Part shown: one piece after another, positions 2,015 to 42,465 of the stretch
Numbering within the stretch: position 1 is the first letter of the stretch
Layout of the letters: the number at the start of each line of letters is the position of its first letter
Assembly (NCBI GenBank): GCA_013115145.1
Contig: JAAPAO010000055.1
Coordinates: 1 to 64,000, forward strand
Direction: 5' to 3'
Source: Perkinsus chesapeaki ATCC PRA-425
Lineage: Eukaryota > Protista > Perkinsozoa
DNA length: 64,000 nucleotides
The notes under the pieces: generated by a model
Databases searched by the model: none
What the model saw: the letters and a program-made list of their open reading frames with translations, nothing else
What the model was told of the DNA's origin: nothing
Position numbers and translations under genes: made by a program

Positions 2015-3343
2015 ATGTCAACCGATGTTAGACGACGCTCGACTATCACTGAGATCCGTGAAATGCAGGGATTGGATGCTCCGTCGAAGAAGACCAGCGA
2101 GGCATCCTCGATAAGTTCCGAGAAGGAAAAAGAAGCTCCACCGGTCACATGGACCCTGCTGCTTCAATTCTGCATCTACGGTTTTGTTGCTTTGGCACCG
2201 TGGAATTTCATCCTTACCGATTTGGTGTATTTAGACAGTAAATTCGAGCACGGCTTTGGTTCTACGATATCTATCTTCTATGGTTTGGCTGTCAACGTGG
2301 CACAGCTCTTTATTATATTCTTTGGTAATAAATTCACATTCGCCCCGAGGTTTGATTGGGGCTGCGGTATCCTAGCGGTCTTCAACGTCCTATTGGCGGT
2401 TGTGGCTATGACTATTGGTACTGATAACCCCTCCACTAACACAGGGCTTGGTAACGCTCTCGGTATAGTATGTGTAATCCTACTCGCCTTTGGTCATGCC
2501 ATTATGGAATCAACTGCATTTGGTCTGGCCGCCCTCTGCCCCAAAGCCTGTATGAACTGGGTCATGGTCGGTGAGGGTATCGGTGGTGTCGTTGGTTGGC
2601 CGATTCTTCTGCTTCTCAACGTCATCTTCGATGCTGGTCACGTGGAGCGCCGAGACGAGTGGGTGTGCTTCGTGTTCTTCGCTCTCACTTCTGTTGTAAC
2701 TTTGGCTGTCATTCCGATGTTCCGCATGGTGACTTCTAAGCACCCCCATATGAAGTTCGTGCTAGCGGTTGAGAAGGACAGGAACAAGTCTGGCTCGCTG
2801 AAGGAGCGACAAACCAGGCGTCCGGTCTGGGAGATCCTTAAGGATGTTGCACCGATGGCCTTCTGTGCTTGGTCTGTCCTCACCATCACTTTCATTTGCT
2901 TCCCATCCCAAACGATGAAGTGGCAGGCTCAAGGCGGCACACAAGACGCTAATAACAAGTTCATACCGATGGTCACCTTTACGTACCAAATCGCCGATAC
3001 CGTCGGCAGATTCTCACCAAATGTCGGGTTAATGATCCCACAAAAGCCGCTCATTGGAGTCGCTCTAGGAAGGGCCTTATTCATACCTCTATTTATTTGC
3101 ACCGCCCTCTATCCCACGGTGAAGCCGTTCTACTGGGACTGGTTTAAGCACGTAGAAATGGTGTTCTTCGCTATCACCAATGGCTTAACTGCCACCTTGT
3201 GTATGATGTACGGGCCTCAAAGGGTACCCGCGGACAAGGCCGAGCAAGAGGTCGCCGGTTATGCTATGGCTTTCTCCCTTATCAATGGTATATTTATTGG
3301 TGGTTTACTTGGTACATTGACTGTATTCTGTTTAGGTGAATAA
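2015..3343 (+). CDS. ENT: Equilibrative nucleoside transporter, copy 2 (tandem paralog, intronless)
   Basis: 442-aa ORF collinear with and highly similar to 114-1439. Confidence 0.93.
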   Translation: MSTDVRRRSTITEIREMQGLDAPSKKTSEASSISSEKEKEAPPVTWTLLLQFCIYGFVALAPWNFILTDLVYLDSKFEHGFGSTISIFYGLAVNVAQLFIIFFGNKFTFAPRFDWGCGILAVFNVLLAVVAMTIGTDNPSTNTGLGNALGIVCVILLAFGHAIMESTAFGLAALCPKACMNWVMVGEGIGGVVGWPILLLLNVIFDAGHVERRDEWVCFVFFALTSVVTLAVIPMFRMVTSKHPHMKFVLAVEKDRNKSGSLKERQTRRPVWEILKDVAPMAFCAWSVLTITFICFPSQTMKWQAQGGTQDANNKFIPMVTFTYQIADTVGRFSPNVGLMIPQKPLIGVALGRALFIPLFICTALYPTVKPFYWDWFKHVEMVFFAITNGLTATLCMMYGPQRVPADKAEQEVAGYAMAFSLINGIFIGGLLGTLTVFCLGE

Positions 3344-5331: not shown

Positions 5332-5554
5332 GTGAGAGCTATATGAACAGAGAATACTGAATGAAGCAGCGATAATATAATAGCGACAATAGATAATGCG
5401 CTCTACCGGGGACATCCTTTGTGTGCGCAATTTCATCCCCATCAGCACCCACCGGTGGTTTTCGATATCTGCCGTTGTAAATATCGCTCGCCCGGATGAT
5501 CGATACCGCTTCCCTTGGCTATACCTGGACCTTAAGGAGGACCGAACAGTCACC

Positions 5555-6232
5555 ATGGTAAGTCGGGACTAAAAGGACATACCGCATCCTTGTTGTGATG
5601 GTTTCAACGTCGACGTTGATATCCACTAAATGCCAATTGTTATGTTGTTTTTGTGTATAGGTTGTTAAGACCGAGCTTTGCAGTTATACGGAGTTCCGTG
5701 TGTACCCCGGACACGGCCAGCGCTTCGTCGCCAAGGACGGGAAGGTATTAGGGGAGCTCCTCGCCCTTCCGTCTTCGCCACTGCAGCTGTTATCTGTTAT
5801 TGTCAGACTCATTTCTTCTTCAACTCCAAGGCCGCTTCGCTGTTCATGCAGCGAATCAAGCCCGTCAAGTTGACTTGGACTGAGAAATGGCGCCGTCTCA
5901 ACAAGAAGGTCAGGACCACCGAGGTAATCATGATATTTGAGAATCTCTTTATGTATAGTGCTATCGCCGATTAGGTCGCCCGCAAGAAGACTCGTCGTAC
6001 CGTGAAGGTCCAGAAGGCCATCATGGGTCTCTCTTTGGAGGACTTCCATAAAAAGAAGTCTGAGCGTACTCAGCTTCGTAAGGAGGCTGATGCCAAGAGG
6101 GCCGCCGAGCTCAAGGAGAAGGAGAAGGCCAAGGCCACTCGCGCTGCTTCCAAGACCGCCAAGCATCAGGATAAGCCTGTTGCCGCCAAGCAGCCCAAGC
6201 AGAAGCAGTCTCGTACTGGCAAGAGGTTCTAA
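5555..6232 (+). CDS. RPL24: 60S ribosomal protein L24 (eL24), 4 exons; first exon is the ATG only
   Basis: ATG|gtaagt. The spliced product reads MVVKTELCSYTEFRVYPGHGQRFVAKDGKTHFFFNSKAASLFMQRIKPVKLTWTEKWRRLNKK...GKRF*, and all introns are GT-AG and keep the frame. Confidence 0.95.
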
Positions 6233-6388
6233 GCAGCACGGCTCCGAGTCAACTATTGCATCTGAAGTTGAGGGGTAGAGCACGGTCTTCTACAACAACA
6301 ACCAGCAGCAACTGAGCTGTCTCCTTGGTGACACTTGTGTGCTTGTGATGAGTGTATTAATAGAAGGGAAGTGGTGATCAAGATGATG

Positions 6389-6490
6389 CTCAGTGATGAT
6401 AACACATTCCGAGGGACATGTGGTACTTAGTGCATCTTGCACGGTCCACTTCCGTGACCATACTATTGAAAGTCATAGTTACTCTGAGAG
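6389..6490 (+). ncRNA. Box C/D snoRNA, snR63/SNORD46(U46)-like
   Basis: C box GTGATGA 6393-6399, D box CTGA 6484-6487, terminal CTC/GAG. Guide GTCATAGTTACT (6472-6483) is complementary to conserved LSU rRNA AGUAACUAUGAC; the D+5 rule gives the A equivalent to yeast Am2256. Confidence 0.85.
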
Positions 6491-6508
6491 CAATAGCAAC
6501 TGATAAGC

Positions 6509-6599
6509 CGCCGTTGATGATAATTCCATTAAGACATTCAGATTAATGAGCGACAAGATGTCGCCGTGAAATCATTTTCCAGCACTGGGCTCTGAGGCG
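6509..6599 (+). ncRNA. Box C/D snoRNA, snR76/SNORD88-like
   Basis: Terminal stem CGCC/GGCG, C box TTGATGA 6514-6520, D box CTGA 6592-6595. Guide AGCACTGGGC is complementary to LSU GCCCAGUGCU (D+5 equivalent to yeast Cm2197); internal hairpin GCGAC/GTCGC. Confidence 0.85.
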
Positions 6600-6618
6600 T
6601 TGAAAAACTTGTCTGCTC

Positions 6619-6755
6619 AGCACGGAGCGTGCAAGGTTGCCTCGGTGTTTGTCCCGTGGCAGCTATCGGTCTTGGACCGACGTGCTACACAAAATGCCAT
6701 ATGAAGACCCATGGGCTGCTACAGTGCTCTCTGTGGATAATGCTTGGCAATAAGT
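6619..6755 (+). ncRNA. Candidate structured RNA (possible H/ACA snoRNA)
   Basis: Hairpin closed by AGCACG/CGTGCT, then ACACAA (fits the H box ANANNA) at 6687-6692, then a second hairpin TGCCA/TGGCA followed by ATA at 6750-6752. It fills the gap between two C/D snoRNAs. Confidence 0.35.
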
Positions 6756-6775
6756 TATAGTCTTTAAGGGCATCC

Positions 6776-6866
6776 TGTCGATGATGATTGTTCCACAGTG
6801 TACTTTTTATCGCTGAGCTCCCTTTGGGAACTTCATGCTGTAAGTGCGAACGGGCGGACTGAGACA
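6776..6866 (+). ncRNA. Box C/D snoRNA, snR70/SNORD43(U43)-like, copy 1
   Basis: Stem TGTC/GACA, C ATGATGA 6781-6787, D' CTGA 6813-6816, D CTGA 6859-6862. Guide ACGGGCGG(A) is complementary to SSU CCGCCCGU (D+5 equivalent to yeast Cm1639 / human Cm1703). Confidence 0.85.
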
Positions 6867-6882
6867 CAAAATGCCCAAGGCA

Positions 6883-6955
6883 GCATCGTGATGATAAATA
6901 TTATGCTCATCAACTGATATCTTTGATGATTCAATCATCCTAACGGTCTGAATGC
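6883..6955 (+). ncRNA. Box C/D snoRNA, orphan (target not recognised)
   Basis: Stem GCAT/ATGC, C GTGATGA 6888-6894, D' CTGA 6914-6917, C' TTGATGA 6923-6929, D CTGA 6948-6951: all four boxes match consensus. Confidence 0.8.
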
Positions 6956-6970
6956 GTCTTCGAAAATGCT

Positions 6971-7060
6971 AACCGATGATGATTGTTCCAACAGTGTACT
7001 TAATAAACCTGACATTCTCCGGAGTGTATGGTGATAAGTGCGAACGGGCGGACTGAGGTT
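6971..7060 (+). ncRNA. Box C/D snoRNA, snR70/SNORD43(U43)-like, copy 2
   Basis: Stem AACC/GGTT, C ATGATGA 6976-6982, D' CTGA 7009-7012, D CTGA 7053-7056. Same TAAGTGCGAACGGGCGGA-CTGA 3' end as copy 1. Confidence 0.85.
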
Positions 7061-9149
7061 GTACGGGTTGACATTTAATTACTACTACCGTCGAACGCAA
7101 TAGAGAATATGGTGAAACCAGCCATGGTGACGAGTTGTGGCGAGTTGTGCAATCACAAGTGAAATGTTTTAGAGACAAAGTACATATATTGGTGATACAA
7201 TATATTTTGATCATACCGCAGTTAGCTGATGATGATGATGTTGTCGTTATTGTTCCAGAGTTGGCGAAGTAAGTGCTGCAAGCCGTGGACCGACAGCTTT
7301 ATATCAGGTAGAGTAGCAGCACTGGAATATGATCACAAGGACTCACCCTGCAAATTAGACTATCAAAATATTACAAATAAAAAGCAAAAAAGCTAATACA
7401 CCATACACGACTTTGTTGATGACGGTTGACTATTGGAGCTGAATAGTTGGTATAAAAAATGGGGCAATGAGAGCTGCACTCCGGCTCCCGAATAATGAAA
7501 GTGACATTGATTACAGTCGCTGACTCCAGAGAGAGACATAAAATAATGTCGTTACGAAAAGCAGCACATTCCATAGGTACAACATGCTACCGTTAATGAC
7601 AATGATGATGATGAGACCCAGAGTACAGCGACATCACGCTCTTCAAAAGTCCGATAAGAGGCTCCCGTTGGTGCCGATAAAGCAGGTGATCTCACAATGC
7701 ATCATCGCCGCCAAGAACGGACGCGAGGTTAGAGGCTGCCCTTGTCAAGAACTGAGGAAGAATGCTAGTAAGATCATGAGGAGGATGATGATGATGATCG
7801 GGAAGATTATTGAACGAGTCCTACTGTTAAGGACGGGCTGGTGGTTATAATACAATCCAGTATTCGACAACCGGTTTCAAAACTGCCACCCCAGATGGCT
7901 GCGATCACGGCACACCTAAGCAGCAGCATCAGTGCTACCAGACCGACGGGTGGCCGCCAGATGTTGCTACCTTATCACGCACTCGATGAGCACTCGTGGG
8001 GCATCAACGCTGGAATCACCTTCAGCGATTTCAGCGGCTACATCTGCATACAAGCTGCGGGAGATAAATTATACGAATAATGTTAAAGTGTGGTACCCGA
8101 ACGCAAGATCAAATCTGCCAACAGATTCACAGCCCTCTGCAACCGCAAAGCTCTCTGATGTTGAGGGCGCACCTGACGAAAATGCAGCTCCTAGGATTCG
8201 AACCTGTGCCGGAATCCCCTCCTACCACCGGTGAACTCGTCAAGCAACTTCATAGCGGTTATCATCTTCTTACTGAACATGAGCGCCGATGTGTCCCTGA
8301 CGCCAGTTGGCGAGCAGGTAGAATCCACACCGGACTGAAAACATAAGGGTTGAACTATCAAAAACCAGTACGGTGTTAGAGGAAATTTTCACAAGTAAAT
8401 ATTTTCTGGAGCGACTTTCACGCCGACGAGCATGATATATTATGTCGGCTCCCAAGCGACCAAAGCAGTTGTGACTTCTATCATCGTCTCGTTGTTAGTG
8501 ATCTCTCTCTAGTGTTATCAACGACTTGTCCAAAGTGTCACTTCCAACAAGTCAGGAAACCAGCAAGCACGCTGAAGCTGCAATTTGAAGAAATCAACCG
8601 CTAGGCAGGCCGGAGGTAGAAAGGGTCCACGAGAGCACCCCAGACGCCGGCTTACCGGCGATTCTGAGGTGCCGAGAGACATAGGAGATACCATGGGGAC
8701 TGCGGGCAGCACAGCAGAAAGGTCACTGGTGTGCGCCTCCCATGAGTCATCGTATCGTCTCGGAGATTGGACCGACAGGGAAGCGGTAGATCTTGACGAT
8801 CTTGGTTGGTCTTTCTGCGCAAATGGTTGACTCGGTCTGGGAGACGTGCTCGTCTCTGACGGCGGTGGCTTCCAGCCACAACGTACGACATACAGTACAA
8901 GTGACGACTCAAATGGTGATGTTATACTGAAACAAAGACATTCGAATATTCCACTAACTCCGAGGCAGCTCTCACCAACGGTCCTTATTATGAACTATTT
9001 TTATGCCTACCACTCCTTCATCATCATCAAGTGGTGGCAATACGGAGCTCGTCTGCTCAGGCCAACAAACGGTAATGTTCGATAACACCTGATGATCAAC
9101 GGGGCATGAAATAACACCCGCCGCAGTGTGACGAAATACCACGCCCACT

Positions 9150-31010: not shown

Positions 31011-42465
<11,455 letters not shown>

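Follow-up and report, generated by a model that had tools for sequence, protein, structure and literature searches.

Small nucleolar RNAs (snoRNAs) of the box C/D type are stable RNAs of 60-110 nucleotides (nt) bound by fibrillarin, Nop56, Nop58 and Snu13, and where their genes form polycistronic clusters (as in Euglena and in the yeast snR72-78 cluster) the units are processed by an endonuclease and exonucleases. Such clusters are known in plants, yeast, Dictyostelium and trypanosomatids (PMC2656528, PMC8817022). The closest known layout to the one described here is that of another alveolate, Plasmodium, where box C/D snoRNAs lie on the same strand 3' of ribosomal protein genes: PFS8, PFS9 and PFS13 follow L7a and PFS11 and PFS12 follow L5, at most a few hundred nt past the stop, with PFS11 and PFS12 being co-transcribed and PFS9 having been placed in the L7a 3' untranslated region (UTR) by reverse transcription PCR (RT-PCR) (PMC2656528). 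Here we consider 64,000 nt of Perkinsus chesapeaki ATCC PRA-425 (positions 1 to 64,000 of contig JAAPAO010000055.1, assembly GCA_013115145.1; referred to as the window), in which a conserved snoRNA gene cluster very probably (at a rough probability of 0.85) lies directly 3' of the gene for ribosomal protein eL24 (RPL24) and on its strand, consisting of five box C/D methylation guides (u1 to u5) and one H/ACA-like structured RNA, with proposed targets. It differs from the Plasmodium clusters in having five to six units, in its 13-14 nt spacers, in starting ~150 nt past the stop, in its eL24 host, and in the presence of spliced-leader trans-splicing, which has been published for the genus Perkinsus (PMC3101222).

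With the clusters of plants, trypanosomatids, Euglena and yeast the Perkinsus locus has in common that several guides lie on one strand with short spacers, that members are duplicated, and possibly that C/D and H/ACA-like units are mixed. Trypanosomatid clusters are tandemly reiterated, whereas the Perkinsus cluster is single-copy in the P. chesapeaki assembly and tied to a ribosomal protein gene. An earlier annotation of the window, made from its letters alone (the sequence-only reading), had called the location of the cluster notable for a lineage that uses spliced-leader trans-splicing. This was overstated: trypanosomes, in which snoRNA clusters are known, also trans-splice a spliced leader. 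Ribosomal-protein-linked snoRNAs had moreover been published for Plasmodium (PMC2656528), and with this precedent the layout is already of a known kind, which will not surprise a specialist and does not change snoRNA biology. In our literature searches no account of snoRNA genes from perkinsids or dinoflagellates came up.

The five box C/D units span 6387-7061, i.e. 670 bp, on the plus strand (Table 1). Each has RUGAUGA near its 5' end and CUGA near its 3' end, with UGAUGA and CUGA exact in every case and 64-95 nt apart, and all of them share one geometry (stem, 2 nt, UGAUGA ... CUGA, stem) with terminal stems of 4-5 bp. The detector used (UGAUGA, a CUGA 40-130 nt downstream and, flanking these, a stem of 4 bp or longer) was run on both strands of the window; on the plus strand it returned only u1-u5 (C boxes at 6394, 6515, 6782, 6889 and 6977), with an identical stem offset, and shuffled windows gave 1.0 ± 1.0 matches per window (two strands summed). 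Because shuffling yields only about one match per 64 kb, five units in 670 bp on one strand are far beyond chance. The sequence-only reading had already proposed five units in ~670 bp on the RPL24 strand, which inspection, detector and shuffles bear out, and it had the C and D boxes right; the terminal stems it gave as 3-4 bp are longer, and the downstream start that it placed ~157 nt after the stop lies at ~154 nt. The short spacers that it reported exist between u1 and u2, u3 and u4, and u4 and u5 (13-14 nt), but the gap of 173 nt between u2 and u3 holds a sixth RNA element that was overlooked. Two minus-strand detector matches (34076-34189 and 31137-31227) were rejected, being isolated and without rRNA complementarity adjoining the D box.

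Table 1. Features of the eL24 gene and the snoRNA cluster (positions in the window)
Feature	Position	Strand	Parts
eL24 (RPL24) gene	5556-6232	+	exons 5556-5558, 5661-5742, 5805-5921, 5973-6232; stop TAA 6230-6232
eL24 3' flank conserved blocks	6280-6332	+	ACGGTCT.CTACAACAA and AGCTGTCTCCTTGG (three-species alignment)
u1, box C/D snoRNA	6387-6492	+	C 6393-6399; C' ~6454-6460; D guide 6471-6483; D 6484-6487; stem 6387-6391/6488-6492
u2, box C/D snoRNA	6509-6599	+	C 6514-6520; second rRNA-pairing element 6533-6542; internal hairpin 6550-6564; D guide 6581-6590; D 6592-6595
Conserved structured RNA, ~140 nt	6620-6760	+	two hairpins and hinge, H/ACA-like
u3, box C/D snoRNA	6776-6866	+	C 6781-6787; C-proximal element 6788-6806; D' 6813-6816; D guide 6846-6857; D 6859-6862
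u4, compact box C/D snoRNA	6883-6955	+	C 6888-6894; D' 6914-6917; C' 6923-6929; D guide 6936-6947; D 6948-6951
u5, box C/D snoRNA, u3 paralogue	6970-7061	+	C 6976-6982; D' 7009-7012; D guide 7040-7051; D 7053-7056

The same locus was found in P. olseni and P. marinus through contigs encoding orthologues of a nucleoside transporter that neighbours the cluster, and the comparison therefore comprises three species (a Logan contig, L149, sought as a fourth, stops short of the cluster). In both relatives the order is transporter, unnamed gene, eL24 (plus strand), ~1.5-1.8 kb without a called gene, and a convergent WD40 gene, and 3' of eL24 the detector recovers the same units, their order unchanged, with 114-154 nt between the eL24 stop and u1 over the three species. 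Conservation was scored as three-way invariant columns of the alignment. D guide plus D box are 94-100% invariant (16 of 17 columns in u1, 19 of 19 in u2, and 19 of 20 in both u3 and u5) and the C boxes 86%; the boxes of the five units as a whole are at 86-100%, and the C-proximal element of u2 (6521-6553) reaches 94% (31 of 33); for the three short spacers the figure is 4-21% and for the flank after u5 15%. In u4 the core of the D guide, ATCCTAACGGT, is identical in the three species, and the D' guide is not conserved. The terminal stems stay paired through changes on both sides, in u1 at pairs 4 and 5 (G-C to U-A and U-A to A-U), in u3 at pairs 2 and 4, and in u4 at pairs 1 and 3. The terminal stem of u2 is invariant and its internal hairpin covaries (C-G to A-U), and in u5 the outermost pair shows a one-sided change, U.G to C-G, with pairing kept. 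Taken over the six sequences of the u3/u5 family, 94.7% of the cells of the terminal stem are paired and three of its four pairs are compensatory, versus 26-42% in slid controls. The records of P. olseni and P. marinus have no gene called at the position of the cluster, in line with the expectation of the sequence-only reading that protein-centric annotation would not see it, and the protein-centred annotation of the three Perkinsus assemblies thus leaves snoRNA genes uncalled.

Whether the guides fit the ribosome of the organism itself depends on its ribosomal DNA (rDNA), which is fragmented among small contigs of the 41.7-Mb assembly. Pieces were recovered with a model for 5.8S, with a pattern derived from the guides and by querying with metagenomic rDNA. 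One contig (L001) carries the 3' end of the small subunit (SSU) rRNA, internal transcribed spacer 1 and 5.8S, and its spacer agrees with PerkITS-85, a primer for the genus Perkinsus, in 17 of 18 bases (PMC11513098); two full metagenomic rDNA units (L061 and L037), only 85-90% identical, served as stand-ins for missing sequence. The u1 guide, abutting box D, forms 13-14 Watson-Crick bp with GGAGUAACUAUGACU of the organism's own large subunit (LSU) rRNA, with the fifth guide nt opposite the second A of UAAC, and this pairing exceeds the shuffle null by itself. The predicted target, which is supported by these data, is the yeast LSU Am2256 site in helix 69 (the snR63/U46 site). A second pairing of u1, between 6448-6461 and the LSU Am1133 region (14 bp: 12 Watson-Crick and 2 GU), was put down to chance, since it runs into the C' box and is disrupted in the relatives, and since at least 12 Watson-Crick bp are reached in about 1 of 30 shuffles.

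In u2 the guide forms 10 Watson-Crick bp with GCCCAGUGCU of the own LSU, its fifth nt lying opposite the third C, and the second rRNA-pairing element forms 10 more with the directly adjoining UCUGAAUGUC. As the two elements pair adjoining rRNA, 19 consecutive LSU bases are covered (GCCCAGUGCU and then CUGAAUGUC). This supports the yeast LSU Cm2197 site (snR76) as the predicted target of u2, and in the own LSU piece the target nts of u2 and u1 are 59 nt apart, which is the Cm2197-Am2256 distance in yeast (PMC5344495). The second element could serve as a further guide for methylation, its D' box (AUGA or UUAA) being degenerate, or as an accessory pairing that aids methylation at the Cm2197 site.

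In the paralogues u3 and u5, a 23-nt stretch of D guide plus D box and a 17-nt stretch of C box plus following bases are identical, and the middles have diverged. Their common guide, ACGGGCGG, forms 8 Watson-Crick bp (6850-6857 in u3) with CCGCCCGU of the own SSU, with the fifth nt opposite the first C of CCC, and past a bulged A its GCG (6846-6848) pairs with the following CGC, adding 3 bp. The predicted target supported for both is the yeast SSU Cm1639 site in helix 44 (snR70/U43; E. coli C1402; human Cm1703), where we take C1402 to be the first C of CCC in CCGCCCGUC. Our yeast numbering of the u2 and u3/u5 sites is in part an assumption from the conserved sequence context, in combination with the 59-nt spacing and published tables. 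The equivalence of Cm1639 (snR70) to the helix-44 residues E. coli C1402 and human Cm1703 (U43) is published (PMC2794176, PMC8817022), and the remaining site-to-snoRNA equivalences follow the same two sources and PMC2656528.

Around u3 and u5 some further elements were seen. A 19-20 nt element after the C box (TTGTTCCA(A)YAGTGTACTT; 6983-7002 in u5) is kept in all six copies of the family; it does not adjoin the conserved D' CUGA and is therefore not a canonical D' guide, and it may pair weakly with LSU UUGGAAUAGUCA (11-12 bp, of which 2 GU, partly within box C) or with SSU GUACAC (6 bp) beside the D-guide target. An outer stem around u3 (GGGCAT / ATGCCC) and a repeated ACACAAAATGCC were discarded because P. 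olseni and P. marinus conserve neither, and so was a third u3/u5-like copy at 7215-7300, the similarity of which is not significant.

For the guide of u4, ATCCTAACGG, the own rRNA pieces offer no target, and the matching part of the LSU is absent from the assembly; the sole candidate is a pairing of 9 Watson-Crick bp with LSU CCGUUAGGA, just 5' of GGACCCGAAAG, in the closest metagenomic stand-ins. Shuffled sequences of 109 nt usually reach 9-10 bp somewhere in 4.4 kb of rRNA, and the matches of u2 and u3/u5 are therefore convincing only because they adjoin box D and fall on known sites. Complementarity of at least 9-10 bp next to D or D' is thus found for u1 and u2 on the own LSU, is borderline for u3/u5 on the own SSU, and is not found for u4 on the own rRNA. 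The three guide families of the sequence-only reading (Am2256, Cm2197 and Cm1639) all hold on the organism's own rRNA fragments, for u3/u5 with 8 contiguous bp plus 3; that reading was to be given up if the guides did not match this rRNA, and for u1, u2 and u3/u5 they do. The locus yields five to six snoRNAs identified with confidence, and in the ribosome's functional centres (helix 69 and helix 44) it predicts three sites of rRNA methylation.

The guide core of u1, GUCAUAGUUAC with one base and CUGA after it, is that of the Rfam SNORD46 consensus, and u1 pairs the same rRNA sequence with the same nt at position 5 as SNORD46, yeast snR63 and Plasmodium PFS14 (yeast Am2256, human Am3739; PMC8817022, PMC2656528). 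Outside guide and boxes u1 has no similarity to SNORD46 (RF00218), scoring 19.7 bits where the gathering score is 40, and it is clustered 3' of a ribosomal protein gene, whereas SNORD46/snR63 is intronic in human and monocistronic in yeast. u2 and u3/u5 set the fifth guide nt on the C residues equivalent to those of yeast snR76 and of snR70, human U43 and Plasmodium PFS3, but have no Rfam match to the snR76 and snR70/U43 families; u2 differs from snR76 by its second 10-bp pairing to adjoining rRNA, and in u3/u5 the duplex is short (8 bp, bulge, 3 bp), and the cluster carries the snR70-type guide twice. The best match of the region, that of u4 to snoR14 (RF01280; E 5e-4), falls with 31.8 bits short of the gathering score of 40 and is a likeness in boxes and spacing and not in guides. 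Because none attains its Rfam threshold, u1, u2 and u3/u5 are best seen as functional equivalents of snR63/U46, snR76 and snR70/U43 and not as members of the models. The Rfam check proposed by the sequence-only reading thus succeeded for the guide of SNORD46, which is identical to that of u1, and failed for the score of u1 and for the snR76 and snR70 families. At gathering thresholds Rfam has no match in the cluster, nor in the loci of P. olseni and P. marinus. In a permissive scan of 6200-7500 nearly all matches are to box C/D families, all sub-threshold (among them u1 to snoR442 with 23.7 bits, and u3 and u5 to SCARNA18), and those above 18.6 bits are all of box C/D type on the plus strand (one of them catalogued as scaRNA).

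H/ACA RNAs consist of a hairpin, an ANANNA hinge, a second hairpin and an ACA three nt from the 3' end, with pockets 14-16 nt from the boxes that pair rRNA around a U. The element in the gap between u2 and u3 shows 56% three-way invariance, compared with 15% in the downstream flank, and its RNAalifold consensus has 33 pairs, seven of them with compensatory changes. The hinge reads ACACAA, AGACAA and AGAGAT in the three species, so that ANANNA fits two of three, and the tail reads AUA, GCA and ACA; the 3' pocket lies ~14 nt from the tail box, and the 5' hairpin is atypical, with a 23-nt gap and a three-way junction. A pocket search for a pseudouridylation target in rRNA gave no consistent match, and Rfam has none either (permissive scan; loci of the relatives at gathering thresholds). 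On balance this modelled structure leans slightly towards an H/ACA RNA. A reading of the stretch as a sixth C/D unit, with CCGA (6677-6680) as D box after a 14-15 bp LSU match of 6662-6676, was rejected: there is no C box, and CCGA is not a D box because the other two species have CCGT.

Several of these results weigh against the identification of the cluster or of its targets. No Rfam family attains its gathering score for any unit. As the assembly covers the own rDNA only in part, some of the target tests relied on the stand-ins. u4 has its only candidate target there, and the 8 contiguous bp of u3/u5 are of a length that matches 5 kb of rRNA by chance fairly often. Finally, no sequence words from the cluster occur in the RNA runs, the only runs that contain the locus being small spliced-leader-primed libraries with contigs that stop at 6289.

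These runs do document the eL24 gene upstream. Its model is based on the splice joints of RNA contigs and on the syntenic orthologues called in P. olseni and P. marinus (153 and 154 amino acids), and a Pfam scan of exon 2 adds a match to Ribosomal_L24e. Three metatranscriptome contigs, all from one sample and 100% identical, align within 5500-7300. They have GT..AG introns removed at 5742/5805 and 5921/5973, start at the 5' end with a dinoflagellate-type spliced leader sequence, and end at 6289, 57 nt downstream of the stop. The introns located in this way confirm that the cluster lies outside introns, as the sequence-only reading had it. The leader is joined at an AG within exon 2 (5682-5684), nine codons into the frame, and not 5' of the ATG at 5556; this internal joint may reflect either internal or alternative trans-splicing, giving a 5'-truncated message, or mispriming by the leader primer with which the small libraries containing the locus were amplified for RT-PCR.

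The contigs terminate within the first of the conserved 3'-flank blocks. These blocks may signal the mRNA 3' end, or they may serve the cluster as a promoter or in processing. A motif consisting of GCACGGT, 6-16 nt and then CCAGCAGCAAC stands ~50 nt 3' of the stop in both eL24 (6280-6312) and RPS21 (contig L148, ~1090-1060, minus strand), and its ACGGTCT part is kept in P. olseni and P. marinus; it may be an mRNA 3'-end or coupling signal.

How the cluster is expressed can be approached from its layout. Because the poorly conserved spacers of 13-14 nt leave no space for separate promoters, we infer that u1-u5 are excised from one common precursor. For the source of this precursor we favour read-through from eL24, at about even odds, which would be in keeping with the common strand, with the 114-154 nt between stop and u1 in the three species, and with the convergent orientation of the next gene. 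The eL24 polymerase II transcript would then continue beyond the mRNA 3' cleavage site into the cluster, and exonucleases, gaining access at the cut that releases the mRNA, would trim back to the boundaries protected by small nucleolar ribonucleoproteins (snoRNPs). In each unit the terminal stem would close off the C and D boxes, which would form a kink-turn to which the core snoRNP proteins bind; the guide 5' of box D would pair with pre-rRNA, and fibrillarin would methylate the ribose opposite the fifth guide nt. In this way u1 would act on the A in helix 69 and u2 on the C 59 nt upstream (helped by its second 10-bp pairing), and u3 and u5 would both, redundantly, guide methylation of the C at the decoding centre in helix 44. 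Two points speak against read-through: if the mRNA ends at 6289, it requires an extra, separate step, and the conserved blocks at 6280-6362 are equally compatible with a promoter.

The latter point leads to an alternative to read-through that has to be taken seriously, even though we consider it the less probable one, namely that the cluster is an independent transcription unit with a promoter in the ~100 nt between the end of the eL24 mRNA and u1 (blocks 6290-6365), in which case the linkage to eL24 would reflect only shared regulation or history. The eL24 RNA contigs do stop ahead of the cluster, the stretch from the eL24 stop to u1 (6233-6385) is 35% invariant in the three species, i.e. more than the spacers and the downstream flank, and in plants, yeast and Dictyostelium clusters are as a rule transcribed independently (PMC8817022, PMC2656528). 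Set against this, merely 55-100 nt would have to accommodate 3'-end signals plus a promoter, orientation and adjacency to eL24 have been kept in three species, a second ribosomal protein gene (RPS21, see below) has the same layout, and in Plasmodium RT-PCR tied one such snoRNA to the mRNA of the ribosomal protein gene upstream (PMC2656528). That same precedent, PFS9 in the L7a mRNA (PMC2656528), could also be taken, together with the 114-154 nt between stop and u1 in three species, to mean that a mature isoform of the eL24 mRNA has a long 3' UTR containing the snoRNAs, which are either released from the polyadenylated message or in competition with it. This is improbable, as the three contigs of the one sample all end at 6289, cluster words occur in none of the runs, and a 900-nt UTR carrying six assembled snoRNPs would make an odd message. 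That the units are chance motif matches or decayed, functionless pseudogenes, for which one could cite that no Rfam family passes its threshold and that their expression is deduced, is effectively refuted by the comparative data, i.e. guides and boxes invariant over three species where the spacers decay and compensatory changes in the stems, in addition to clustering that far exceeds chance and to guides that exactly complement known methylated sites of the own rRNA. Read-through from eL24 stays the favoured source of the precursor, and either way the locus offers a compact, conserved test case for snoRNA expression in a trans-splicing alveolate.

Elsewhere in the genome, six C/D-like units with stems of 3-7 bp, some of which form evident paralogous pairs, lie downstream of the RPS21 gene and on its strand (L148, i.e. 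C3170:15189-18275, minus strand, ~900-130). Judged by its motifs, this is a second predicted snoRNA cluster linked to a ribosomal protein gene. Together with the Plasmodium precedent the two loci point to ribosomal-protein-linked snoRNA expression in Myzozoa, and because Plasmodium shares the layout, it could be ancestral to that group. It is tempting, although rather doubtful, to go further and regard the 3' flanks of Perkinsus ribosomal protein genes as a general home of snoRNAs that replaces the intron hosting of animals, where precursors would be read-through tails freed by cleavage, both outputs would be coupled via one promoter, and the ACGGTCT-type block would be the coupling signal.

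The rDNA itself is shattered over several contigs (C3059, i.e. L006/L132, C2962, C1730, C3219 and C135); the LSU piece of C3059 begins abruptly at ACTGTTTAAT beside an unrelated CG-rich repeat, and short rDNA-like pieces, 73-93% identical to a stand-in, occur inside large contigs. This may be due to assembly chimeras, an insertion into the rDNA or dispersed rDNA fragments. Two tandem intronless genes for equilibrative nucleoside transporters (Pfam PF01733) occupy 114-1439 and 2015-3343 of the plus strand of the window. Both P. olseni and P. marinus have several paralogues of this transporter, and the neighbouring transporter is 90% identical to one protein of P. olseni and 87% to one of P. marinus.

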